Shown one piece after another: positions 3,257 through 34,154 of a DNA stretch of 64,000 nt. Where the stretch lies: the sequence record PP695294.1. The stretch is one strand, 5' to 3'. The translations under genes were made by a program, and so were the position numbers. The notes under the pieces were generated by a model that saw only the letters and a program-made list of their open reading frames with translations, had not been told where the DNA came from and made no database searches. The number at the start of each line of letters is the position of its first letter. Positions within the stretch are counted from its first letter, which is position 1.

Positions 3257-5770
3257 ATGGAGAACTGGCTGGTCGCTCACGCCGTTAAAAATGCGTGGCA
3301 GCGTCCGTACCTCGATGGGGTGTTGAACATTGCGCCTTTTCGATTAACTGAAAAGACCGGAGCGATCGGGTTTTTCAAGCACGGGCGTAATCCGATTCCT
3401 TTACCGGGCGAGGGGTGGTGGCACGCGTTTGTAATTGACAAGCTCCACCTCAACTACGGCAACTTGAGTATCCCTCCTGAGCGCTGGAAGAAACTTACTA
3501 CGTGTGTAAATAACTTCCATGCGTGGATGCAGGTGTACAACGAAGATGGGACAATTATCCCGTCGAACTCTGTGTATTTCTGGCGGACACTCTCTGGTCA
3601 GATTTACATGGCGATTCCGCAAACGGAACGCTACAAGTGGTTAGACGACACGCCGTGTTATCTGCGCATTTATGCTGGTAATGATGGCGGCGAAAACGCT
3701 CCTGTTGTTAAACCGACGTTCATCGAACCGTATAATCCGCCGAACCCACAACAGATCCAGATCGTCTTAGACCGTTATAATCTGTTGAAAGGCCAGAAAA
3801 TCGGCTATGTCGATTTCTGGGTAAACGGAAAGATGATTGCTGATCCTAAGCCCGCGGATATCAAAGCGTGGGACGATGTTGAAATCCGTGTCGATGGGCG
3901 TATTCGTCGTGTGATTGAATACCGTTGTGGGGATTTGCAAACGTTCTACTCAACGCTTGACCAAACACGAAAATACCTGCTGCACATTCCAAAAGGGGAT
4001 GGCATTTGGATTTTCAACAGCGATTGTGAAATTCAGTTGTTGTGGAAAGGCGAGGGACGTTACTACCATCGCCACCGCCATCTGGCCGTACGACAATTGA
4101 CGTGGAACGATCTATCGATTCCTTCGATGCGGATTTCGAAGTACCGCACCGCGTTCAACACCCCGATGAATGATATCGACGAACTAACGATTCGTTTATT
4201 GATACGCGACGATTTCCTTGACCTGAAGCCGCTGTATAATTCCACCCACACGCATGATCTCTATCGTCTTAGCGACGAGCAAATCATCGGTGCGATGGTG
4301 GGGGCAAACTCCAACGTACCAGAGTGGACCGCAGCAGCGCTCGAAGAATCGGCAGCGAATCGGTTAGCGGCGGCCAAACTCCGGAACATCACGCGCGATC
4401 TTTGCACTGATGCGTACGGCTACAACGCTGCTGCACGTTACAGCGCCGACACACCGCAGCGTCTGGAACTTACCTCTGGCGGTTATCGTGGTATTTTGCC
4501 TGACCTACTGGCAACATTGTCGACTGTATACGAATACGATGCCGATGGGTTGCTGTTAGAGCATCACCGTAATGCAGGCTACGATGTTTACATCCCTCGC
4601 AATCCGGAAGCACGAATCATTGAGGCAATTGCAGGTGAAGTCTCAGATGCGGTGAAGATTGTTGACAACGCTCCCGACTTTGAAATTGAGCCAGGTTCGA
4701 ACGTTGGACTGTGGATTCGAATGGTCATCGGGGAGGTTCCAACTAACGACTACTACAAAGCCGAGGAAGGAACGGATTATACCCGCGACGGAAATAAAAT
4801 CACCTGGACCGTAGATCGGACACGACGTCACCCGACAGTGATTTACGACGACTTCCATCTGTTCTTCGAAGTGGATGTTAAGGTGTCGGAAGGTCAGATA
4901 CGTATTCCGATTGTAGCACGTAACCAAGACGGGCAGCAGCGCACGCTGTGGCTACCGATGGAAACGGTTGAAGTGTGGTTGAACAACCACCCACTGGTGC
5001 ACGGTATCGATTACCACACCCGCTGGCCGGAAATTGTGGTGGTTTGTAAAGCATGGATGGCGGACGGGGATACAAATAAAATCTCAGTGCGTTGTCGTGG
5101 CGTGACCGGTGAACTCCGTATTCCTAAACACGGTTTCGTGTCAAGCGGACTGCTGTCTAATAACAGCCAGTTTGATTGCCGTGACGACAAAGTGATTCGT
5201 GTCGTGGGTGGTGGTTCACTGTTACTGCGTGACGAAGTCGTGTTCCGTGAAGACAACACTGTAGGTGTCGATATCGTACAAGACGGGTTCCCGTACTCAG
5301 TCGACGATCCGACTATTCCGTTACGGACGTTGGTAAGCGGCGATACTTACAAGTTGCGCGACACTGCCCGCGATTTGGACACACGCGTTGAGGCTTATTT
5401 GTCTAACTGGTTCCCAACACCACCGCCGGTTAACCCGGTACCGTTGCCGTATCTGTATCACCTCTATTCGCCAACCCTGAACAAGATCTTGTGGGACTAC
5501 TTACAAGGTATTCTGATTCTACGGGAAGACGATCCGGAGTATCGTATCTCGACGTCACAGCTGGATAACATCATGGAGCGTTATAAAGACCTCCTGCCGT
5601 TTGACCCGGCTTATATCGGTTACGATAAAGCGTTTGTGAAACTGCATCCGCATGTGAAGTACGAAACGGTAGAAATCAACGAACTTGGCTTTGCTTTCTT
5701 AGACCGCGTCAATGAACGTTATCTGAATGGCGAAGTGCAGCTTAATCAGTATCTGATAATCAAGGGTTAA
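3257..5770 (+). CDS. Large virion structural protein (tail/baseplate-associated, phiKZ gp27-like position)
   Basis: 837 aa, GAGG SD, tightly packed in the operon before the terminase. Confidence 0.6.
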   Translation: MENWLVAHAVKNAWQRPYLDGVLNIAPFRLTEKTGAIGFFKHGRNPIPLPGEGWWHAFVIDKLHLNYGNLSIPPERWKKLTTCVNNFHAWMQVYNEDGTIIPSNSVYFWRTLSGQIYMAIPQTERYKWLDDTPCYLRIYAGNDGGENAPVVKPTFIEPYNPPNPQQIQIVLDRYNLLKGQKIGYVDFWVNGKMIADPKPADIKAWDDVEIRVDGRIRRVIEYRCGDLQTFYSTLDQTRKYLLHIPKGDGIWIFNSDCEIQLLWKGEGRYYHRHRHLAVRQLTWNDLSIPSMRISKYRTAFNTPMNDIDELTIRLLIRDDFLDLKPLYNSTHTHDLYRLSDEQIIGAMVGANSNVPEWTAAALEESAANRLAAAKLRNITRDLCTDAYGYNAAARYSADTPQRLELTSGGYRGILPDLLATLSTVYEYDADGLLLEHHRNAGYDVYIPRNPEARIIEAIAGEVSDAVKIVDNAPDFEIEPGSNVGLWIRMVIGEVPTNDYYKAEEGTDYTRDGNKITWTVDRTRRHPTVIYDDFHLFFEVDVKVSEGQIRIPIVARNQDGQQRTLWLPMETVEVWLNNHPLVHGIDYHTRWPEIVVVCKAWMADGDTNKISVRCRGVTGELRIPKHGFVSSGLLSNNSQFDCRDDKVIRVVGGGSLLLRDEVVFREDNTVGVDIVQDGFPYSVDDPTIPLRTLVSGDTYKLRDTARDLDTRVEAYLSNWFPTPPPVNPVPLPYLYHLYSPTLNKILWDYLQGILILREDDPEYRISTSQLDNIMERYKDLLPFDPAYIGYDKAFVKLHPHVKYETVEINELGFAFLDRVNERYLNGEVQLNQYLIIKG

Positions 5771-7460: not shown

Positions 7461-9572
7461 ATGATACTGCGAAAAAACGATTGGCGACACTATCCGGGGG
7501 CGATTGTTGACGACGTCACACCAAACGTGCACTTCCTTCAATTCGCCACAACACTACAAGGATTAGGTGTCCAGCATTGGTACGTCCACCTGGCATTACA
7601 CAATCCCGAACTCCGTGGTGTTGATCCGTTTAGCCCGGATTTAACACTCGAACAAAAAGCGATGATTGTTACGGAGTGTGCGGAAAACCCATGGTACTTC
7701 TTCCGTGAATGTGTCCGTGTCCCTGCGGATGGTGTAAAGAACGGGATGCCGTTTCGTCTAGACCGCGGTAACTTTTCGATGTATTGGATTTTCTTCAACA
7801 ACATCGACGCCGCTATCGAGTTTCTCCGTCAGCATGGTAAAACTGTCGGGATGTCCGCATTGCTATTGTGGCTGATGCGCTTCCTGGAGAACTCACGTAC
7901 GATTCTTATCACGAAGGGTCCTGCCCTGCGTGAAGAAACTATCAACAAAATGAAACAACTGCGTAACGCGTTACCGGATTATCTCTGGCCACATCACCCG
8001 GACGATCCTGATAACCGTGAGACATTTGCATGTCTAGCGCAGGGTAACAAACTTATCACCGGCATCGGTCAAAACGATAAGGAAGCTGCGAACGGGGTAG
8101 GCCGTGGACTCACAGCCGGACGCCTGTTCTCGGATGAAGGACCGTTTACCAACAACATCCACCACATCCTCCCTGCTGCACTAGCATCGGGTACCGCGGC
8201 GCGTCGTATTAACGAAGCCGAAGGTGTTCCATACGGCAACGTCTTCGCAACAACGCCTGGGGATTTGGCGACAGAAGAAGGCGAGTACATGTACAGCCTG
8301 ATGACGTCGGGGATTTCGTGGGATGAACGGTATATCGACATTCCGACTCGTGCACAACTGATTGACATGATTCGCAAAGGCTCTACTGCGAAGATTCCAC
8401 GTATCATGTTCTACGTGAAATACAACCACCGCCAACTCGGTACCACGGACGAAGAACTCGCAGATATGATTGCGAACGCCCCAGGTACACCAGACCAAAT
8501 CCGCCGTGACTTCGGTGGTGAATGGACAACCGGTGGTTACAACAAACCGTTCTCAGGCGATGATGCAAGACGTATGAACGCCTCGCGTATTCGGGCAGCA
8601 CAGAAAATTATCTCTGCTTCCAACTACGTAACGGATTGGTATTACACCGAAGAACAGATGCTGGTTAAAATGCAAGACCGCCACATCATCGGTTTGGATA
8701 CTTCCGAAGCCGTGGGACGTGACGCCATTGCCATGTCAATCGTCAACTCTGTCACTGCCGAATATGCCGGCAAGCTCACCGTGAACGAAACAAACGTCAT
8801 CGGGTTTGCGATTCACTTAGCAGACTTCATGATCGAATATCCGAACACGGTACTCATTCTGGAACGACGGTCTACCGGCTCCTCGGTAGCAGATGCCATC
8901 ATACTGCAGCTGCAATCTAAGGTTCGCGATTTGCATCGTCGTTTGTACGTGAAAGTGACCCAGGATTACTCAAGGAACGATGAACTTTACAAAGAGTTCC
9001 ATCGTGGCCCTGTGGGCAGTCCAGAGCGCTTCTGGGACAAATTCCGTAAATACATCGGTTTCTCAACCGACCAGGATAAACGCCGTAAGTTGTATGGTGA
9101 AGTATTTACCACGGCGTTGCGTCTTTCTGCGGACTTACTGCGGTCAGGCGAATTGATCGACCAAATCCTCGGTCTCGTCGAACGAAACGGGCGCATAGAC
9201 CACCGTGCATCCGGTCACGATGACCTGGTAATATCCTGGCTTCTGGCAATGTGGTTACTTCTGTTCGGCAACAACTTAGGCCACTACGGTATAAGTAACA
9301 GCCGACTGATGATGCGCAACCGCAATATGCTCGGGGGCATGGCAGGTGAATTCGATGAAGAGGCTGCAGTCGAGGAAGAAGAAAAGCAACAACAACTGAT
9401 GGGGCAAATTGAAACGATGATTAGACAGAGTCAAGTTGTGGCCGACCCGGTACAACAGCTCATGTACAAGAATCGTATTCAAGCGCTCGTCTCTCAACTC
9501 AACACTGACGTTCGTAACGTCGCATCGATGGAAAGCTTGAAAGAGCTAATCCAACGACAGAGGATGAAGTGA
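7461..9572 (+). CDS. terL: Terminase large subunit
   Basis: 703 aa. Walker A-like RQHGKT, Walker B LFSDEG, RNase H-like nuclease IIGLDTS...GRD and HDDLVIS. Confidence 0.9.
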   Translation: MILRKNDWRHYPGAIVDDVTPNVHFLQFATTLQGLGVQHWYVHLALHNPELRGVDPFSPDLTLEQKAMIVTECAENPWYFFRECVRVPADGVKNGMPFRLDRGNFSMYWIFFNNIDAAIEFLRQHGKTVGMSALLLWLMRFLENSRTILITKGPALREETINKMKQLRNALPDYLWPHHPDDPDNRETFACLAQGNKLITGIGQNDKEAANGVGRGLTAGRLFSDEGPFTNNIHHILPAALASGTAARRINEAEGVPYGNVFATTPGDLATEEGEYMYSLMTSGISWDERYIDIPTRAQLIDMIRKGSTAKIPRIMFYVKYNHRQLGTTDEELADMIANAPGTPDQIRRDFGGEWTTGGYNKPFSGDDARRMNASRIRAAQKIISASNYVTDWYYTEEQMLVKMQDRHIIGLDTSEAVGRDAIAMSIVNSVTAEYAGKLTVNETNVIGFAIHLADFMIEYPNTVLILERRSTGSSVADAIILQLQSKVRDLHRRLYVKVTQDYSRNDELYKEFHRGPVGSPERFWDKFRKYIGFSTDQDKRRKLYGEVFTTALRLSADLLRSGELIDQILGLVERNGRIDHRASGHDDLVISWLLAMWLLLFGNNLGHYGISNSRLMMRNRNMLGGMAGEFDEEAAVEEEEKQQQLMGQIETMIRQSQVVADPVQQLMYKNRIQALVSQLNTDVRNVASMESLKELIQRQRMK

Positions 9573-11326: not shown

Positions 11327-12460
11327 ATGATGAACTATGAACGTAAGCACGCGTGGCAAGAAAAGCTACGCACGGGACAGATACATTCTGCCCAACAAGT
11401 GAAGATGTGGGTGCTGCCACACGGCGTCATCTGCGAAATGGTCCAGGTCGGAGGATTACCTATTCTTCGAAATGGTAAATACGATTCGATGAACACGGTA
11501 CTCGCACGCTTGCTGGCCGATGCAGGCATAATGGGTACCGTGATTTTATATTCAACCGCAACGATTCCTCAGAACCTTTCTCGCTGGTTAACACATTGGC
11601 TTTCCAATGACCCTAGCGAGGACGATCCGTGGCTACGTTCGATGACAGTGACAACAATGGGTCAACGGCCGACGAAACCCCTCCCATTCCAGGTCAATGT
11701 AATTGAACCAGCCATTCTGGAAGCGGGTGAAGTGTTTGAAGCAATCAAACATCGATCTCGCGATGTTAGCATCAGTCAGTTTCTTATCGAAGCGAATGAT
11801 GTGACTTACCGGCTGGAGCCCGTACGACGTATGGACGCTCGTATCATCGACTGCACAGAGTTTGGGTATGTCTTGCGCACACAGGGCAACCACACGTTCC
11901 TGGCATCGATGCTTTCTCGCCGCGTGCAGGGACAATTAGCACACTACAAAGTGTCCCCTGCTGACCTCGTCGGTACCGACGTTAAGGTCGAATACACAAT
12001 GTTTACCGAAGGGAATCGACTGTGTAATTTTAAGTCTCCGGTAGTCTATCGGAGTAAGGCACTTGATGCCTTAGGCGACCAGAATGTCCCGACATACGAT
12101 GGCCCCTATCCGTTTAAATCGCAAGCATCTGCAAACCGTGCGCTCCTTACGGTAACTCGGTGTAAACGCGCAGCGATCACACGGACCGATGGGGAAATCT
12201 ATGGTAAGGACACTGAGTCTGACGCAAAACTCTTTTCGTTCCGGCGTGGTGTAAAACCTGGATTGTATGCCGCAACGTTTGAAAAGGGGGATGACGTCGA
12301 GTTCTGGCAGTTCGACAGTGATTTTGCGGTAGATGCAATAGACCCAGAAGCGTTAGTGAGTGTCATCACAGACCAAATCTTTTACGCGACGGGTATGAGC
12401 CTGCTGGAAATCTTTTTAATGTACGATGCCAGATTACCTTCACAGTCAGTCAAAACGTAA
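11327..12460 (+). CDS. Hypothetical protein with a degenerate ATP-dependent DNA ligase-like fold
   Basis: 377 aa, GGAG SD. Ligase-like spacing (LRNGK; YRLEPVRRMDARIID; LVGTDVKVEY...FKSPV) but no KxDG motif. Confidence 0.5.
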   Translation: MMNYERKHAWQEKLRTGQIHSAQQVKMWVLPHGVICEMVQVGGLPILRNGKYDSMNTVLARLLADAGIMGTVILYSTATIPQNLSRWLTHWLSNDPSEDDPWLRSMTVTTMGQRPTKPLPFQVNVIEPAILEAGEVFEAIKHRSRDVSISQFLIEANDVTYRLEPVRRMDARIIDCTEFGYVLRTQGNHTFLASMLSRRVQGQLAHYKVSPADLVGTDVKVEYTMFTEGNRLCNFKSPVVYRSKALDALGDQNVPTYDGPYPFKSQASANRALLTVTRCKRAAITRTDGEIYGKDTESDAKLFSFRRGVKPGLYAATFEKGDDVEFWQFDSDFAVDAIDPEALVSVITDQIFYATGMSLLEIFLMYDARLPSQSVKT

Positions 12461-12470
12461 GGAGCATCCT

Positions 12471-12980
12471 ATGTTTACTGCGCCAACCATGCGGGTGGGG
12501 CAAGGTCTTAACCTGGTGGTACACGACCAGCGGTTAATCGACCTCTGTGACACAAGCATAATTACTGCGATGATGGACCATAACCCTTTAGGTGACTACG
12601 GAAATACCAGCGAGATTTTGGCTGTTGCTGCCGTCCTCCGTCGTATTTACGGTCAAATAACCATCGTAGATCTCTGTAACTTCATTGACAACCACAGAGA
12701 TTTAACTAAAGGGTTGGTCGCACTTACTCAAGATGGTGTGTCAAGTTTTGACAGTTCTCTTGGTAATTTCTTAGACATCGGTTCCGGGTTCGACTCCGGG
12801 TTAATGTTCATCACACGTGAACGCTACGTCGCCGTCTGGGAATTTCTGCAACGCATGGGTGTGCATGTTCCTGCAAAGATCATGCATTACCAAACTTACG
12901 ACCTGAATATTTTCGGGGAGCCAGGGTTATGGATAAAACCAGTACACCTTGGCCTTGATGGCTATACCATCAAGTGTTAA
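12471..12980 (+). CDS. Hypothetical protein (start revised to 12471, 169 aa)
   Basis: AAGGAG SD before ATG 12471; followed by a terminator. Confidence 0.65.
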   Translation: MFTAPTMRVGQGLNLVVHDQRLIDLCDTSIITAMMDHNPLGDYGNTSEILAVAAVLRRIYGQITIVDLCNFIDNHRDLTKGLVALTQDGVSSFDSSLGNFLDIGSGFDSGLMFITRERYVAVWEFLQRMGVHVPAKIMHYQTYDLNIFGEPGLWIKPVHLGLDGYTIKC

Positions 12981-12987
12981 GTCACTA

Positions 12988-13030
12988 GGCGTACTCTCTT
13001 CGGGGAGTACGCCAATCTTATTTTTTTTAT
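12988..13030 (+). terminator. Intrinsic terminator
   Basis: GGCGTACTCTC-TTCG-GGGAGTACGCC plus a long T-tract. Confidence 0.85.
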
Positions 13031-13671
13031 TTTTTTGATTATTTTTTAACCGGCCGGTTAAAGGGGGTCTAGGAGACGTCAGAAAATGATTAAGTGGTCT
13101 GGATGTAGGGTAGCTCGTTTTTGGCAGTTTATCGTTTTCTAGGGTCGGTTACGTGCGTTTTAGAGGGGGTTATGCATCGAGACAGAGAATTTATTTTTGT
13201 CGGGGCGAGGAAATTCAGGGAATGGGGATTCAGGATTGTATGTTTTTTAACCAGTTATTAAAAACGCTCTAGAAAGCGCTAGAACGAGATTTATACCTGA
13301 CCCAGTACACTTGGGTTCCCCCTACCGGAAAATCGCGCCAGCGGGCCGTTGAGAGCGCGAGAGTGCCATTCCCGTTTCGGTTCCGAGGTGACGGTCGCGG
13401 CCGGCGACGACGATCACACGTTGGGTAGCACTTCGTGCCATGTCTGGGTGAAAACTGGATCGTTCTGTAACCGACACACACTGTCGGTTACTTACGAGTT
13501 CTTTGGGTTGTTTAACTCGCTCTAAAATCCCCCTTAGGGGATAATTTAATCTAATTCTCAAAATTTCTTTTTAAAACAATCACTTAGATTGTTTTTTAGA
13601 TTGATCCTGTGGATCGGGTCGAAGACCCTTTCCTTATACGCGTGCGCGTGCGCACACCCGTATCCTCCAGG

Positions 13672-13781
13672 ATCTTTTAAAAGATATATAATAATATTAA
13701 ATATAATAATACCTTTAGGTATTATATTTAATTATTATAATTATTTATATAAATAAATATATTAATATATTAAGATCTTAA
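13672..13781. other. Extremely AT-rich element built from chained palindromes (candidate replication origin / DNA unwinding element)
   Basis: Perfect palindromes at 13672-13685, 13741-13756, 13756-13771 and 13770-13781; hairpin 13706-13725; flanked by ACGCGTGC boxes. Confidence 0.6.
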
Positions 13782-13869
13782 AACGCGTGCAGGCGCGCGC
13801 GTGATCCTTATTAAGAGATCGTGATCGGACGGAAGTCCTAGTTTGGGTACCCTGTGTATTTTTTACGTG

Positions 13870-13997
13870 GTTTCCCTATCGTGTGTTCAGACCACCACAC
13901 GACGTCCAAAACCCATAGCTTCGGTGGCCGCCTCCCTGGACGGCAGACTCTGACAAGTCGACCCACACCACCAACCCGTCCGGGGACGGATTTTTAT
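13870..13997 (+). ncRNA. Putative small structured RNA ending in a terminator
   Basis: Hairpins CGTGTG/CACACG and GCCG/CGGC; terminator CCGTCC/GGACGG plus TTTTT; no credible ORF. Confidence 0.35.
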
Positions 13998-14017
13998 TCC
14001 AACGACAAGCTCCACGA

Positions 14018-14093
14018 AAATCCCCGCAGAGGGACTCACTGCTGTGTGACTCACCGGCTCCTGGACGCCTACGCCTCGAGCCGGTAATTTTTT
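14018..14093 (+). ncRNA. Putative small structured RNA or terminator
   Basis: ACCGGCTC (14053-14060)/GAGCCGGT (14078-14085) stem plus TTTTTT, with small upstream hairpins. Confidence 0.35.
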
Positions 14094-14109
14094 GATTACG
14101 TGAGTTTGT

Positions 14110-14690
14110 TGTTATATGCGAATAGCGATTGACCGCGCCAATGGTCCAATCACTTTTAAACCCTGCACGCTAGGGCTCCAAGTCCTGGGACTGATACCCA
14201 GGACGCTTTTTCGAAAATACCTACCGTGGTGTCTTCGACAAAGCGCAATCTAACACTGCGTGATTTATTATGTTCTGGAAAACTTTCGCCGTGGAACAGA
14301 ACCGGTGAGCGTCGGCGGGGATTCCGACAATCACCACCCATTCAGGTACTCGGTAAATAACCGACCTGCCGACGGTGCTACGTCGGGCGTAGTTCGGTTT
14401 GCGAGAGTGTCGAGAAAGTCGACTGCGCACCCATGACAAAATCCGAGTTGACCGTGGCAGCGCCAGAGGACTGGGCAGCGGAGAGACGTCGTTGAACTTA
14501 CCTCCGATAGTTATCGCTGATTCCGCTCTGGCGTCGGGCCAAAACTGATTCGAATTCGGCGTTGCGTCGAAAAGGGGTCTGCGTGTAGAACCGCAGACTT
14601 GGGGGATAACTCCAAAGTGGGGTGATCGGATCTTGACGGCTCGGAATAGACGAGAGGGGCGGGTACTCCCGTTGAGAAACGACGGTACCT
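14110..14690 (+). ncRNA. Putative large (~580 nt) multi-domain structured ncRNA
   Basis: No SD-supported ORF. Nested helices 14442-14449/14638-14645, 14461-14468/14526-14533, 14182-14189/14197-14204 and 14577-14583/14592-14598. Confidence 0.6.
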
Positions 14691-14698
14691 GGCTGATT

Positions 14699-14707
14699 AA
14701 AATTTAC
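14699..14707 (+). promoter_or_regulatory. AAAATTTAC middle-promoter-like motif
   Basis: 44 nt upstream of the ATG at 14751; recurrent motif. Confidence 0.55.
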
Positions 14708-14750
14708 AGATTCTGCGTGAGGTATGATAAACCAAACGGAGAATTAAACC

Positions 14751-15326
14751 ATGAACTTGTATCGCGTCGGGTTTTACCGAAACGAGATGCCTGAATCGGT
14801 TTTGGTTGTCTTAGCCGAAAACGAGGAGCAGGCCAAATCCTTCTGGCCGGTTAGCGCAGAGCGTCCAGCGGTTGCGTGCTGCTACGACGGCGCTGTGTCT
14901 ACCCCGATGGTTACGCCTGGGGTGGTTCTGAAGCAAGGCCGTTGGGATGATTATTCCCATCCCGGTTTGGAATTTGTTTCCGAATCCGCCAGACACACCT
15001 GGAATCTTACCACGGGTAAAACCAGAGTGTACTTCGGCTACCAAGCCAAGCAACCGTCGATCATCAAGCTGTACCTGGTTTACAGCGACGTCGCTACCGA
15101 AGACTATGTCGACGCCGGAATCATCGTCGGGGCAACAACCCCCGAGGCGGCATTCGCACATTGGGACGGTGATAAACCCGGAATCGTTTCGGTCTGTGAG
15201 CTACCACTTGAAGCCGGTTTGGTTACGAACATCAAGTGTGAGCAAGGCCAGGAGCTGACTTGGATGCGCCAGGATTACCTGACGGAAACGACATTCGAGT
15301 ACACACCGAGGAAGGTGGCCCAATGA
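14751..15326 (+). CDS. Hypothetical protein with two copies of a small domain also found in 16048-16290
   Basis: GGAG SD. Repeats NLYRV...VLVVLAENEEQA and KLYLV...GIIVGATTPEAA. Confidence 0.7.
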   Translation: MNLYRVGFYRNEMPESVLVVLAENEEQAKSFWPVSAERPAVACCYDGAVSTPMVTPGVVLKQGRWDDYSHPGLEFVSESARHTWNLTTGKTRVYFGYQAKQPSIIKLYLVYSDVATEDYVDAGIIVGATTPEAAFAHWDGDKPGIVSVCELPLEAGLVTNIKCEQGQELTWMRQDYLTETTFEYTPRKVAQ

Positions 15327-15814
15327 CGACGATAGCGTTCGATGGAAAAGTCTTAGCTGCTGACGGCCAGTTAACCCGTGGGTCGAATATCTGCAACCTG
15401 AATACCCAGAAGTTATTCGTCTGCCCTTCTGACGAGGAATGGTGGATTACTGGTGAACGGATTGTGGCGTTCGGAGTAAGCGGCGACATCACAGGACAAT
15501 TGGCCCTGCTGGAAACTATCCGCTTGAGACCTGGTTACAAGGGGTTAACGCAAAGCTCGCAGTTACCTGCGAAGATGGATTTTACTTTCCTGATGCTTTT
15601 GGCCTCAGGAAAAGCGATAGTCGGCGGAAAACGTGAAGACGACGTGACGTTGTGGTGGAGTGAAGCCACACCACCTCTGGCAACCGGAAGCGGTTACGAG
15701 TACGCGTTGGGTGCGATGAAGATGGGCGCGAATGCGGTTCGTGCTGTTGAGATTGCGTCCGAATGCGATATCTACACCGGTGGTGAGATTAGCACTTACG
15801 AACTACGGAGGTGA
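15323..15814 (+). CDS. Ntn-hydrolase, HslV/proteasome beta-type threonine peptidase (start revised to 15323, 163 aa)
   Basis: ATGA overlap with the upstream gene. N-terminus M-TTIAFDGKVLAADGQ.T; conserved K in QKL; ATGSG; DIYTGG. Confidence 0.8.
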   Translation: MTTIAFDGKVLAADGQLTRGSNICNLNTQKLFVCPSDEEWWITGERIVAFGVSGDITGQLALLETIRLRPGYKGLTQSSQLPAKMDFTFLMLLASGKAIVGGKREDDVTLWWSEATPPLATGSGYEYALGAMKMGANAVRAVEIASECDIYTGGEISTYELRR

Positions 15815-15907
15815 ATCATGCGGGAGTCAGAAGCACGCAAGCTTGACCCCATCAATCGCCTGCGATAACGGGGTAGCGCATCCGTATAAACACGTTTAAA
15901 GAATTCT

Positions 15908-15983
15908 GGGGGTATGGCGCAATTGGTAGCGCACCGGTCTCCAAAACCGAAGGTTCGAGGTTCGAAACCTCGTGCCCCCGCCA
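15908..15983 (+). tRNA. trnW: tRNA-Trp(CCA)
   Basis: 76-nt cloverleaf: acceptor GGGGGUA/UGCCCCC, anticodon loop CU-CCA-AA, T-loop UUCGAAA, encoded 3' CCA. Confidence 0.93.
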
Positions 15984-16047
15984 CATTTAGCCAACGAATT
16001 CAGGTTCAACACAGAAGACACAGATTTGTCAACTGTTGGAGAACAAC

Positions 16048-16290
16048 ATGAATTTGTACTTGCTAGAACGAACTGACGATATCGGGTATGATGAATTTGA
16101 TTCCATAATCGTGGCGGCTCCTACGGAGCAAGCCGCGTGTGCAATTCCTCCCGACCGTGGTTATTGGATGGACTGCCGCTGGTTACCGAAAGAGCGCTGG
16201 GATGAAGGGCTTACCCTGACCGTTACTCTTATCGGCACTACGCACTATCCTGCTGGGACCGTCGTTCATGAATCGTTCAATGCTGGCTAA
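16048..16290 (+). CDS. Small hypothetical protein (80 aa), paralog of the 14751 domains
   Basis: GGAG SD before ATG 16048; MNLYLL...SIIVAAPTEQAA. Confidence 0.7.
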   Translation: MNLYLLERTDDIGYDEFDSIIVAAPTEQAACAIPPDRGYWMDCRWLPKERWDEGLTLTVTLIGTTHYPAGTVVHESFNAG

Positions 16291-16292
16291 AC

Positions 16293-16310
16293 AGTGGGCT
16301 TCGGCCCACT
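16293..16310 (+). other. cUUCGg hairpin with no U-tract at the start of the ncRNA array
   Basis: AGTGGGC-TTCG-GCCCACT. Confidence 0.6.
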
Positions 16311-16321
16311 AACCCTATTCG

Positions 16322-16470
16322 AGCCATGATACTTACTCAGATTGTGCGGGTTGATGTCCCGCATGAGCCGGTAGCAGCTCAGACCTACGGTAAACCGATA
16401 AATCCGTAGCAGCCAGGTACACAAAGCACCAGGTCGCTTGTACAGGATGCTGGGTATCTGACCGGTCATA
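16322..16470 (+). ncRNA. Putative structured ncRNA A (~150 nt)
   Basis: Helices TGCGGG/CCCGCA, TCAGA/TCTGA (16379/16457), CTACGG/CCGTAG, CAGC/GCTG and CCGGT/ACCGG. Confidence 0.5.
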
Positions 16471-16565
16471 ACCTCATTCGATACGAGACACGTTTATGCA
16501 TGAAATACTCCAGTACATCAGGATGTTGATTTCCAACGTCCGGTTCTGGGTATTCAATCATGTTT

Positions 16566-16687
16566 GGTTTACAGGCGATGGGTTTTCCCGTAAGGGCCCC
16601 ACTTACAGACTGGCGTCTCCACGACAACCGTCCCTAGGGGACAGGCAAGCACCGGCCCATTAAGCCGCCATGCTACGCCTGTAAATC
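16566..16687 (+). ncRNA. Putative structured ncRNA B (~120 nt)
   Basis: Perfect 10-bp closing stem TTTACAGGCG (16568-16577)/CGCCTGTAAA (16676-16685) enclosing CCC-GTAA-GGG, TGGCG/CGCCA and GTCCC/GGGAC. Confidence 0.6.
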
Positions 16688-16691
16688 CACA

Positions 16692-16893
16692 ATCTGATAA
16701 CCGAATGGGATTGAGTTCCCAGTGTTAGGGTGACTGTGTGTCACCGTAGGCGCGGTACCTCATACGGCCGGTACGCCACGAATGTACGTGATAGCGGGTG
16801 GTGCTTGGAGACGCTAAGACCTGACCTTGCGGCCAGGCTCAGAAGAAGAAGTCCATCACCTGCAATCAGAAATGAATTTAGGTTAATTATCGG
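16692..16893 (+). ncRNA. Putative structured ncRNA C (~200 nt)
   Basis: Closing pairing 16694-16702/16881-16893; GGTGAC/GTCACC; 10-bp helix 16794-16803/16854-16863 with G-U pairs. Confidence 0.5.
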
Positions 16894-16934
16894 AAGCGGC
16901 GAAATCGCTTACGTGATAACTTAGTAGTATGCAA

Positions 16935-17320
16935 CGAACAATACCAGAGTGACTTTACGAGGTTACTGTGGTATATGTCGGTGCTCCGGGCAACGTGTTG
17001 CCGCAGATAGGCCCGAGGGAGCTGAGTGCACTAACACACGCCGGGATGCACCGGCACCTTACAATGGGAGCGCTGTCACCATCAGTGATGACAGGAGTGA
17101 AGGATTCGTACCTCACTCGACTGGGCGGAAGCCTGGGCGTTCCCCCATCTTCACATCATGGCCGGCTTGCCGGTTCAACGTTGACGTCTCGTAAGAGATT
17201 TCCAGTCAGGCAACTGATAACACACCTAAGCGTCGACCTTGGACGTATGGTGTCTGGTTAAGTCCCCCGAAACGGAAACCAGTAGGGGTGTGGTACGTTG
17301 AGTGTAACTATCATGATGCC
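16935..17320 (+). ncRNA. Putative structured ncRNA D (~380 nt) directly upstream of a tRNA-like element
   Basis: Back-to-back helices ATACCA/TGGTAT, GGCAAC/GTTGCC, GCCGG/CCGGC, CTGTCA/TGACAG, GAGTGA/TCACTC, GACTGG/CCAGTC, TCTC-GTAA-GAGA and CTGGTT/AACCAG. Confidence 0.6.
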
Positions 17321-17329
17321 ATGAACAAT

Positions 17330-17399
17330 GGCTTTGTAGCTCAGGTAGGTAGAGCAACCTCTTCGAGGAAGGTCGCCGGTTCGAGTCCGGTCAAAGCAA
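17330..17399 (+). ncRNA. tRNA-like RNA with a 13-nt anticodon arm (tRNA mimic or pseudo-tRNA)
   Basis: Canonical U8A9, GCUC/GAGC D-arm, AGGUC variable loop and GCCGG-UUCGAGU-CCGGU T-arm; anticodon arm 4 nt short; G1-A72 mismatch; no CCA. Confidence 0.75.
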
Positions 17400-17476
17400 G
17401 AGCAGCGAAGTTAGAGGAATTAACACCCGACTCATAATCGGATATTTCGCGGGTTCGAATCCCTGCCACTTGCTCG
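17400..17476 (+). tRNA. Degenerate tRNA with CAU anticodon (Met or Ile2; possible pseudogene)
   Basis: Anticodon arm CCCGA-CUCAUAA-UCGGA and T-loop UUCGAAU. T-stem bulged, acceptor stem imperfect, no CCA. Confidence 0.6.
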
Positions 17477-17486
17477 CCCTATGTAA

Positions 17487-17505
17487 ACTCAGATATATTT
17501 TACCT
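17487..17505 (+). promoter_or_regulatory. Variant early (vRNAP) promoter-like motif before the HNH gene
   Basis: CAGATATATTTTACCTAAG resembles AGATATTACCTAAG at 19434. Confidence 0.45.
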
Positions 17506-32430: not shown

Positions 32431-33798
32431 GTGAGAAAGGTACCAAAATTCTACGGAATATCCGGCCGGTTGGTTAGTCAGGATAACTATTTGTCCGATT
32501 TGCAAATAGAAGCTGCAGCCAAAGGTATTAAACCACCCACTATTATTAACGATGTCGCCGTTAACGGGGATGCGATCGAGGTTGCTGAACTTATCGATCG
32601 CATGGTACAGAACAGAATCGTTGACGAAGAACTGAACTCTGCACCGATTTGTAGTTTGGATTGTCCGGCACCGATCGCGCATCGTTACAATCTCGGTTGT
32701 AAGTGTCCGACGTGTGGCTATGTTGTAACTGAACATCGAATTGAATCCGATGTCTGGTTACGTGCACCTGATGAAATGGGTAACTTCGTCAACCCACGAT
32801 TCTGGGCAATGTTCAATGCTTTCTTTAATAGCAAGTTGAAGAAGTTTGAACGTAACAAGGTCACTATCGAACGTGGTAATGACTTGATGATGTGGATGAT
32901 TGACCCGTATTACCGTATAGAAGAACCAGACGGTAAACGCGCACATGCTGTGAAACGTGTATTGGAAGAACATGGTTTCGTTCGTGGCTTGCGCAATCTG
33001 GTTGATAACCACGTTAGTATCTTTAACATCCTTACCACGCCAGAAGCCTGGAAGGAAATCTTCGCACCTAATCGGCATAACGCCGCTGAAGGTGAACGCT
33101 TACGTTTACAATGGAAGGAGCTATTCGAAACGCAACGTCACGCATTCTTCCCAAGACATTTACCGCTAATCTCCTCTAAACTTATCGTTACTGAGGAAGG
33201 TCGTCGTGGTGTCATGGTAGACCCAGTGTTCACGGGTGCTATTGACGCGGTGAAAAATATCGCGTTGCTCTATACGCGGCGTAAAGCGATCGAACCACGT
33301 TTTCTGATTAGTCGTGCTTTGAAAGCGAACCGTCAGTTAACGTACTTCCACATGGACTTCCGTCGTGAGTCTATGGAAGGTAAACCGGGTGACTATCGTG
33401 CGAAATTGGGTTCTACCCATATCCCGTTCGGTGGTCGTGCAACCATCTCACCTATCTCAGAACCACACGATGCCTGGAAGTTAAAAGCACCATGGCGTTG
33501 GATGGTTGGGTTGATGTCGACCCACATCGAGAACAAACTGCTACGACGGGGTTATTCGTCACGGCAATGTGAGCGTATCGTTGCAAAAGCGGCAATGCAG
33601 TATGACCCGCTTGTAGACGAAATCTTTAAAGAACTGATTCGTGAATCCCCAGGCGGTCTTGGGATCATGGTCATACCGTTACGTAACCCAACGCTGGTAC
33701 AGTTGTCTATTCAAACGCTGTACATCGATGAAGTTGTTACCGATGTTAACCAGTGTTCGCTGCGTATCTCTGACCGTGTGATCAAGATGGCTAACGGT
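32431..33798 (+). CDS. nvRNAP beta-prime N-terminal subunit, exon 1 (phiKZ gp55-like)
   Basis: Zn-ribbon CSLDC...CKCPTC; GKPGDYRAKLG; GGRATISP; LRNPTL; ends ...KMANG at the predicted 5' splice site. Confidence 0.88.
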
Positions 33799-34154
33799 TC
33801 GAAAAGAGCCCCATCGGACGGGAAACCTCTGATGCGTATTCTCCTGAAATGCTGGGAAACCCTAAAGCGTATCTACCAGAAATGGGGACGAAAGTCTGAA
33901 ACAACAGATACGATGGCCTACGCTAAACAATACTGCTAACGGTTGTGATAATGGGTAATCAGCAGCGAAGCCTCGTGAGAGGAACGTTCAACGACTATCG
34001 CTGAAATGCGAGTAGGGGTCCCAGTGGACTTCGAAGTGGGAGAACACCTAAGGCGATAGCTATGGTGAAGATATAGTCTGTGCCTTATCGAGAGATAAGG
34101 AGGGTGTCTTAGCACACCTGCTGTATACGGAAACGGTATACGGTGGACAAACAG
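33799..34154 (+). mobile_element. Group I self-splicing intron, 356 nt, no internal ORF
   Basis: P1 GGUUC-GAAAA-GAGCC with a U-G wobble at 33798; P AAAUGCUGGGAA (33847); Q AAUCAGCAGC (33957); R GUUCAACGACUA (33986); S AAGAUAUAGUC (34068); P3 UUCUCC/GGAGAA; terminal G 34154. Splicing restores MANG-DFDGD in frame. Confidence 0.93.

Follow-up and report, generated by a model that had tools for sequence, protein, structure and literature searches.

The final 64 kb of the genome of Salmonella phage 1252 (PP695294.1, 243,229 bp; 100% identity match) form the window analysed here, a stretch of 64,000 nucleotides in whose coordinates positions are given unless the record is named (record position = window position + 179,229). 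The phage belongs to the SPN3US group, which the literature handles as Chimalliviridae, and its closest classified relatives are assigned to Seoulvirus. GC content is 48.7% in the window and 48.5% in the genome. The large terminase gene occupies 7461-9572 (PHROG terminase large subunit, E = 5e-63; gp260 in SPN3US). Together with four genes without an assigned function it precedes a 1.77-kb gap (12981-14750) that has no notable open reading frame (ORF) and is free of genes in the depositors' annotation as well; beyond it come small genes and two tRNAs. The subject of this report is a module inside that gap, at about 13.7 kb of the window and 192.9 kb of the record, some 4 kb from the terminase gene. 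It is a cis-acting structural DNA element, not a gene, and it is the strongest candidate to date for an origin of replication (or a packaging site) among the nucleus-forming jumbo phages. Its parts are listed below, with the strand where a part has one.

13560-13830: whole module, about 270 nt, non-coding.
13560-13587, + strand: upstream conserved motif AAAATTTCTTTTTAAAACAATCACTTAG, an A-rich run followed by nACTTA, kept in 10 of 10 aligned phages and occurring once in the genome.
13575-13628: variable spacer, with hairpins AACAATC/GATTGTT (13575-13593) and GGGTC-gaa-GACCC (13616-13628) and GATC at 13603 and 13612.
13630-13657: left clamp, consisting of the TTCCTTAT repeat half and then a 23-nt GC box of alternating purines and pyrimidines, TATACGCGTGCGCGTGCGCACAC.
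13657-13685: left anchor CCCGTATCCTCCAGGATCTTTTAAAAGAT, with GATC at 13671 and palindrome ATCTTTTAAAAGAT.
13672-13781: A/T core, the candidate DNA unwinding element (DUE), 92.7% A/T and the genome minimum of duplex stability.
13706-13725: dyad element 1, ATAATACCT-tt-AGGTATTAT, at a fixed offset and with covarying stems in relatives.
13741-13771: position of dyad element 2, here the all-A/T palindromes TTATTTATATAAATAA (13741-13756) and AATATATTAATATATT (13756-13771).
13770-13781: palindrome TTAAGATCTTAA at the right edge of the core, with GATC at 13774.
13783-13803: right clamp, GC box ACGCGTGCAGGCGCGCGCGTG, with two runs of alternating purines and pyrimidines.
13801-13828: right conserved box GTGATCCTTATTAAGAGATCGTGATCGG, with GATC at 13803, 13817 and 13823 and the second ATCCTTATTA repeat half.
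13857-13890, + strand: a neighbour outside the element, the promoter-like TATTTTTTAC-N15-GTGTG of the downstream noncoding RNA.

The 55-aa ORF with a TTG start that crosses the A/T core (13589-13756) is a mechanical one; it is unannotated, and indels break it in relatives.

The first-pass annotation of this DNA had described 13672-13781 as nearly all A/T, and the count agrees, with 8 G/C in 110 nt. The whole genome was rebuilt from the record and then scanned for composition, duplex stability, alternating purine-pyrimidine tracts and GATC. Its most A/T-rich 100 nt are those of the element (94/100; runner-up 75/100), which also holds the two longest runs free of G and C (54 and 28 nt, followed by one of 19) and the least stable 100-bp duplex as judged by nearest-neighbour energy (z = 8.5). 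The left GC box is the longest alternating tract of the genome, 23 nt as against 16 for the next; tracts of this kind are prone to form Z-DNA. GATC is depleted genome-wide (497 observed vs 948 expected, a ratio of 0.52), and its densest cluster, 7 sites in 250 nt where 0.5-0.6 are expected (next 4), again falls in the element; three of its sites (13603, 13612, 13671) precede the core, and four (13774, 13803, 13817, 13823) lie at the right edge of the core or beyond it. Three genome extremes, those of duplex stability, alternating tract and GATC density, thus coincide within about 200 nt (13602-13828). Since the remaining A/T-rich spots of the genome coincide with copies of a repeated phage promoter, the module is one of a kind; its conserved boxes likewise have no other copy in the genome. 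The GC-rich ACGCGTGC boxes that had been reported on both sides of the core are present, at 13638 and 13783, the left one lying one base away from the position first given for it (13639). A mobile-element reading of the flanking repeats, along the lines of a miniature inverted-repeat transposable element, was rejected: the element is single-copy, and the apparent inverted repeat of the GC boxes stems from their (CG)n-like nature.

The five palindromes named in the same annotation were all found where it had placed them: ATCTTTTAAAAGAT at 13672-13685, ATAATACCT-tt-AGGTATTAT at 13706-13725, and TTATTTATATAAATAA, AATATATTAATATATT and TTAAGATCTTAA to their right. Because long palindromes are cheap in A/T-only sequence, the longest single arms (8-9) are unremarkable alone (p 0.15-0.2). 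Their number is a different matter, since the region has 5 perfect palindromes with arms of at least 6, where shuffling its 121 nt with dinucleotide counts preserved yields 0.94 +/- 1.0 (p about 0.008). Treated as single-stranded DNA, the 206 nt from 13630 to 13835 fold much more stably than their shuffles (z = -4.4).

The element is present in related jumbo phages. When a 2-kb region was compared with phage genomes, DNA-level similarity to the Erwinia phages Stratton, phiEaH2 and Asesino was confined to about 200 nt around the element (about 80% identity). A more sensitive search places the element in 63 phage records, among them Wellington and Kwan (Wellingtonvirus), Huxley, Machina, Caitlin and ChrisDB (Machinavirus) and several Korean isolates, and in four genera: Seoulvirus, Erskinevirus, Machinavirus and Wellingtonvirus. 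It is always syntenic, following homologues of a 377-aa and a 169-aa protein and preceding the tRNA-Trp region. An exact-pattern scan of viral contigs added one new homologue (L025) among 56 matches, nearly all the others being due to chance; a metagenome scan for the element gave only chance matches among the matches listed, and a protein-guided search for further relatives of the locus returned SPN3US itself only.

The order of the parts is constant. The upstream motif AAAAATTCTTTTTAAAACAGnnACTTA comes first, followed by a variable GC-rich hairpin, by ATCCTTnnATTAnACGCG with the alternating GC box, by the anchor CAGGATCTTTT(AAAAGA), by the A/T core, by the second GC box, by GCGTGATCCTTATTAmGAGATC, by a variable stretch and finally by the TTTTTTAC motif with its invariant TTAC. 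These parts differ in how they are conserved. The GC-rich hairpin of the spacer is different in each relative. The alternation of the left clamp, read by eye from the printed sequences, is retained over 15-25 nt in most relatives despite differing sequence. Within the left anchor, GGATCTTTT is invariant in 10 of 10 phages, CAGGATCTTTT is found in 9 of the 10 and TCTTTTAAAAGA in most. The box GCGTGATCCTTATTAmGAGATC is nearly invariant in Seoulvirus, Erskinevirus and the Huxley-type Machinavirus. The core measures 73-138 nt in relatives and is 77-94% A/T.

The syntenic gap of Derbicusvirus (CR5, Phobos, Derbicus) holds a different stretch, 78% A/T and purine-rich, with a central palindrome and a G-rich box. 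It has neither sequence homology to the element nor a GATC cluster, and is therefore not counted as the same element; it may be a functional analogue. The stretch lies at 4930-5080 of locus L074 (CR5), 4940-5080 of L075 (Phobos) and 4990-5130 of L076 (Derbicus). There GGGGGGATCAAGGGGGGATGG is followed by about 110 nt with short repeats (ATGGATAA, GAATGAATG) and the central palindrome AATTGAT...ATCAATT, and a canonical promoter marks the end of this stretch.

In 11 of 12 phages the core holds exactly two hairpin-forming dyads with G:C pairs, and these start at +36 to +41 (dyad 1) and +75 to +80 (dyad 2) relative to the CAGGATC anchor. The stems of dyad 1 read ATACCT/AGGTAT, ATATCT/AGATAT or TATCCC/GGGATA in different lineages, and the pairing is always Watson-Crick. 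Those of dyad 2 are unrelated to one another and yet complementary (ACTACTAC/GTAGTAGT, AAACCC/GGGTTT, AACTC/GAGTT, ATATCT/AGATAT); in phage 1252 this dyad is the all-A/T TTATTTAT/ATAAATAA. At least two types of Watson-Crick pair, with no broken pair, are seen at 7 of the 8 stem positions of dyad 1 and at all positions of dyad 2, a count that is biased by the prior selection of perfect hairpins. A pair of such hairpins is seldom obtained when each core is shuffled (p from 0.001 to 0.13, depending on the phage), and the constancy of their positions does not depend on that selection. Almost every G and C of the inner core sits in the dyad stems. Taken together, the comparison points to selection on secondary structure, that is, on a cruciform or on hairpins of the unwound strands, and not on a fixed protein-binding sequence.

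The element is nearly devoid of RNA. Logan contigs from two infected-culture RNA-seq libraries and one metatranscriptome were mapped on 11600-17500; such assembled contigs show presence better than absence, and the time points of the libraries are not stated. In the two culture libraries depth over the upstream genes is 27,000-111,000 and 8,000-46,000. At a terminator hairpin (12988-13013) it collapses, and across 12979-13766 one of the two libraries has 166-321 and the other 0.2-4. Over 13570-13766 the three runs give 166, 1.9 and 0 vs thousands in the flanks, so that the element lies 100- to 10,000-fold below its surroundings. Depth climbs again inside 13767-13963, with 5' ends of contigs at 13900-13908, and an abundant conserved noncoding RNA begins about 100 nt downstream of the element. 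In the promoter-like motif that precedes this RNA, TTAC is invariant and a T(A/G)TG block is conserved. The element contains no copy of the canonical repeated promoter of the phage (tcAGATAGATATTATCTnagtGAg or GATATATATTACCT, found some 25 times on the + strand); a match at 13716 was discarded, as it has 2 mismatches, lacks the flanking consensus and is not conserved. Rfam gave no match to the element at the gathering score, the best (E-value 0.11) reflecting A/T composition.

The ORF-free stretch that follows, 13885-14750, is itself of interest. It is abundant in the RNA contigs (depth 3,000-45,000), with adapter-marked ends at 13900 and 14176, and an independent metatranscriptome contig spans 13908-14176. 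It carries a chain of terminators of the hairpin plus T-run kind, its RNA fold has z = -3.8, and it matches no Rfam family. Blocks conserved across genera are CTGCTGTGTG; GCTTTTTCGAGArT..CCGTGG..TCGACAAAGCGAAA..CTAACACT..TTTGTTTAGTATGTTC; and CACCACCCATTCAGGTA. The stretch has the appearance of a so far undescribed cluster of noncoding RNAs that SPN3US-like phages express at high levels.

The element thus stands exactly at the boundary between an upstream operon of very high expression, a zone of silence and the block expressed next, and such a location would suit a topological or regulatory role. The melting core and the Z-prone tracts would store or absorb supercoiling, and would either activate the promoter of the noncoding-RNA and tRNA region at the right or insulate it from the late operon at the left, which includes the terminase gene and its neighbours. 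It is established DNA physics that a weak duplex, Z-prone tracts and cruciform-prone dyads all respond to negative supercoiling, and the element, as read by eye from the printed positions, is always found about 20-60 nt from the conserved TTTTTTAC...T(A/G)TG motif that heads the abundant noncoding RNA. The ilvPG promoter of E. coli is activated by an upstream destabilised site; in both arrangements a strongly destabilised A/T-rich site precedes an active promoter by roughly 100 bp. They differ in that the spacing here is unconserved, the element is unique, and invariant flanking boxes and GATC clusters accompany it. Indeed the distance to the promoter-like motif ranges from 22 to 62 nt through unconserved sequence, and this variability argues against a phased activator. 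Nor is the element needed as a terminator, since the upstream operon ends about 650 nt earlier, at the 12988-13013 hairpin. None of the approximately 25 canonical promoters has a comparable module, and the clustering of GATC and the invariance of the flanking boxes would be left unexplained. A role in supercoiling or regulation is possible, but we consider it rather doubtful, and place it second among the roles weighed here.

The GATC sites bring a different function to mind. Phage 1252 encodes a D12-class (Dam-family) adenine methylase (PP695294.1 48199-49017, outside the window), whose closest non-jumbo relatives are annotated as Dam and which is present in every related genus with the element. 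GATC enrichment of the element is significant in 8 of 12 relatives. Clustering does not track the presence of the methylase, as all the related genera with the element, including a GATC-poor sublineage, have the enzyme, and a proposed correlation between the two was dropped.

In phage P1 the pac site is 161 bp long, has an IHF site and the cut site between two groups (4 and 3) of GATC-bearing hexamers, seven in all, and is regulated by Dam methylation (PMC10028697). The present element might by analogy be a pac site for headful packaging that is gated by adenine methylation, with the first terminase cut falling in the centre between the GATC clusters (3 left, 4 right). Like its P1 counterpart it has seven GATC in two clusters around a centre of about 100 bp, here in a GATC-depleted genome; the phage has its own Dam-family methylase; the large terminase gene is near, in a synteny that extends to Derbicusvirus; and headful packaging is assumed for these phages. 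The resemblance fails in several respects. Only one of the seven sites (13822) fits the P1 hexamer TGATC(A/G), there is no IHF consensus in the element, and its position is intergenic, neither within nor beside a recognisable small-terminase gene, whereas P1 pac lies within a terminase-subunit gene. A centre that is 93% A/T and forms covarying hairpins is untypical of known pac sites, and one sublineage has lost most of the GATC sites.

The starts of several GenBank records, which fall inside the core, might be cited in favour of a packaging cut. In window coordinates they lie at 13706 (Proteus phage 7), 13704 (SPFM2), 13767 (SPFM17), 13776 (SPFM16) and 13768 (SEGD1, EC001, Lh1B and JN03), while the SPN3US record starts at 13567, at the upstream motif and 71 nt to the left of the GC box. 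The starts coincide with palindromes: dyad 1 begins with base 13706, and TTAAGA|TCTTAA is centred exactly on 13776. The SPFM genomes are SPAdes assemblies of NexteraXT libraries; the SPFM16 record lacks 13713-13775, and SPFM17 apparently lacks the left part of the core. Given the palindromes and the type and gaps of the SPFM assemblies, the record starts look like effects of assembly or convention and not like evidence of termini. One DNA assembly (X1) crosses the element unbroken. With these points against it, a methylation-gated packaging site is unlikely, and it ranks below a supercoil-responsive regulatory role.

Some SPFM records (LR535901, LR535903-LR535908, LR535911-LR535913, LR535917) match the region, within their first few kb, as 18-27 short pieces at 98-99% identity, which suggests a locally scrambled or low-quality assembly at the locus.

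An attachment or positioning site has also been considered, for instance a tether of phage DNA to the chimallin shell, to a capsid-docking site or to a segregation-like protein, and so, as an alternative, has a recombination hot spot. Only generic facts speak for it, in that the element is unique, conserved and untranscribed and has invariant flanking boxes that could bind protein; the nuclear-shell anchor that the first-pass annotation had offered as an alternative finds no support. There is, on the other hand, no repeated parS-like array and no precedent in the literature searched, no partner protein was found, and the weakness of the duplex at this site would go unexplained. We regard such a function as very unlikely. 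The neighbouring genes are equally uninformative about a partner. The adjacent 169-, 377- and 458-aa proteins have no match in Pfam or the PDB, and searches of PHROGs and the atlas gave nothing significant or useful. For the 169-aa protein directly upstream, a language model suggests resemblance to the DUF772 transposase DNA-binding domain (with a high score), and its AlphaFold model (pLDDT 73, pTM 0.71) has no significant Foldseek match in the PDB or AFDB. The 377-aa protein is labelled "putative DNA ligase" in two records.

Replication origins commonly combine an AT-rich DUE, a GC-rich neighbour, hairpins and a long intergenic gap near active promoters, as exemplified by T4 oriF and oriG, the primary origin of T7, lambda ori and RK2 oriV. 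The first-pass annotation had compared the element with such an origin. The comparison stands as far as a unique cis-acting element, an easily melted core and GC-rich clamps are concerned; origin function itself stays a plausible proposal, with GC skew uninformative and initiator-type repeats, DnaA boxes and 13-mers absent. The same annotation had stated that origins of the Chimalliviridae are not defined, and this is consistent with the literature searched, in which there is no defined origin or pac site for SPN3US-like phages or for the family. None of the terms origin of replication, replication origin, pac site, headful and concatemer appears in a 2026 review on the biology of jumbo phages, and a genome-wide transposon study of phiKZ notes that core aspects of packaging remain unexplained.

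Of the roles considered, the most likely is, tentatively, that of the supercoil-sensitive unwinding site of the phage replication origin, possibly of the T4 type in which a promoter is combined with a DUE. In the mechanism that we infer, negative supercoiling would melt the A/T core of about 110 bp, the weakest duplex of the genome, and transcription that runs away from the core, out of the strong noncoding-RNA promoter about 100 bp to its right, would reinforce this supercoiling in the wake of the polymerases. The flanking alternating GC boxes would serve as clamps or as Z-DNA sinks that confine the bubble. On the opened strands the two dyads could fold as hairpins and provide a structure-specific entry for the helicase and primase loading machinery of the phage. 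The upstream promoter-like motif might fire a short transcript into the core, where it would be kept as an R-loop primer in the fashion of T4 oriF and oriG, and methylation of the flanking GATC clusters by the Dam-family enzyme could tune opening or timing. About 85% of the genes (an estimate) run rightward from the element, so that rightward replication from it would be co-directional with transcription.

Middle promoters of phiKZ are described as having an A-rich repeat and TACT at about -22 (PMC8244752), and AAAATTTCTTTTTAAAACAATCACTTAG may be a promoter of this type directed into the element. Because the motif fits that description, an origin like T4 oriF or oriG is an attractive specific model. 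Here a promoter-like motif stands about 50-110 nt upstream of a strongly A/T-rich unwinding element, a layout like that of oriF (at uvsY) and oriG, in which a middle-mode promoter is combined with a downstream unwinding element that forms an R-loop primer, and the duplex instability of the core is of the strength that a T4-type origin calls for. Both phages are large and virulent, with their own replication and transcription machinery and without DnaA boxes or iterons at the site, and a headful, circularly permuted genome is assumed for phage 1252. The promoter role of the upstream motif is in the present case a prediction, however, and no R-loop RNA is seen in the RNA contigs. The core is about twice as long as in T4, and covarying dyads, Z-prone GC clamps and GATC clusters are absent from the T4 origins.

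With E. coli oriC, P1 oriR and RK2 oriV the element shares an A/T-rich DUE bracketed by GC-rich DNA, a single intergenic copy per genome and, in a Dam-positive host, GATC sites clustered above background, as at oriC. Unlike them it has no DnaA boxes, GATCTnTTnTTTT 13-mers or iterons. A DnaA box (TTATCCACA or TTWTNCACA) is not found in 12981-14750, even at one mismatch to the strict box, and the oriC 13-mer is not found with up to one mismatch; by manual comparison GATCTTTTAAAAG fits the 13-mer consensus at only 7 of 11 specified positions. As far as its sequence allows it to be classified, the element is not a member of the oriC, iteron or P1-pac type. The absence of host-type sites is unsurprising in a phage presumed to exclude host proteins from its nucleus, and for the same reason the initiator, if there is one, must be phage-encoded.

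A k-mer scan of the gap for iterons, which would be at least three direct repeats of some 17-22 bp next to the A/T-rich region, yielded only GTCGGTTAC, three times. This sequence or its complement has 3-4 copies in the noncoding gap (13144, 13467-13491, 14357) and 8 exact copies genome-wide, and two of the copies pair as a 10-bp hairpin, GTAACCGACA-cacac-TGTCGGTTAC. The enrichment is too weak for an iteron label.

Several observations weigh against an origin. Over the whole genome GC and AT skew follow the gene strand and show no switch at the element. A repeat search gave low-identity A/T repeats only, with no iterons or repeated initiator boxes, and no recognisable gene for an initiator, helicase loader or primase adjoins the element. 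The RNA contigs contain no distinct transcript starting at the upstream motif (13560-13587), from which the proposed primer would arise. The cores of Wellington and Kwan have no GC-containing hairpins, so the dyads are not indispensable. In the sublineage of Caitlin, ChrisDB, SNUABM4 and SNUABM9 the element and the methylase are kept and most GATC sites are lost; methylation therefore cannot be essential, and can act as a modulator of the element. In phiKZ-like phages, moreover, replication may be initiated chiefly through recombination, which is what T4 relies on late in infection, and a topological or regulatory role would be served just as well by an AT-rich unwinding site.

A fuller version of the origin proposal is put forward with more hesitation, as a possibility that we would not count on. 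According to this version, the module would be the first pinpointed cis-acting origin of a nucleus-forming jumbo phage and would be independent of host factors. It would be built from a promoter, a supercoil-melted core between Z-prone clamps and two hairpins selected for their structure, with firing or packaging timed by the phage Dam enzyme through GATC. Some 300 bp would then suffice for foreign DNA to be replicated or packaged in the phage nucleus.

The question of how replication and where packaging starts in the Chimalliviridae can now be put to a single fragment of about 270 bp, which stands out by its uniqueness, its conservation and its extreme physical properties. Should the fragment prove to be an origin or a pac site, it would provide a handle for replicons resident in the phage nucleus, or for transducible cargo, in the SPN3US genetic system, and its combination of weakest duplex, alternating clamps and paired dyads would serve as a search template in other jumbo phages. 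Should it prove to be neither, a conserved supercoil-sensitive switch beside an abundant and unannotated noncoding RNA cluster would still be worth knowing.

Some further features of the window were recorded in passing. The repeated promoter-like motif tcAGATAGATATTATCTnagtGAg (variant GATATATATTACCTaggtGAG), whose roughly 25 genome copies are nearly all intergenic and on the + strand, occurs for example at 17492, 19431, 22397, 30344, 38900, 40316 and 44059. It is probably the conserved A/T-rich early-promoter motif that a review of jumbo-phage RNA polymerases predicts for each jumbo phage. A 191-aa ORF at 14751-15326, beside an HslV-like gene, is missing from the related phage sampled in RNA run X16, where a contig joins 14750 to 15323, and RNA depth over it is about 0 in runs X15 and X16; it represents an indel polymorphism among close relatives. 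A second tRNA-like gene at 17330-17399 scores 40.9 bits with the Rfam tRNA model, while ARAGORN reports only the tRNA-Trp at 15908-15983. Finally, a group I intron (Rfam RF00028, 69 bits) at 33779-34100 overlaps and extends past the end of a 502-aa ORF (32431-33939).

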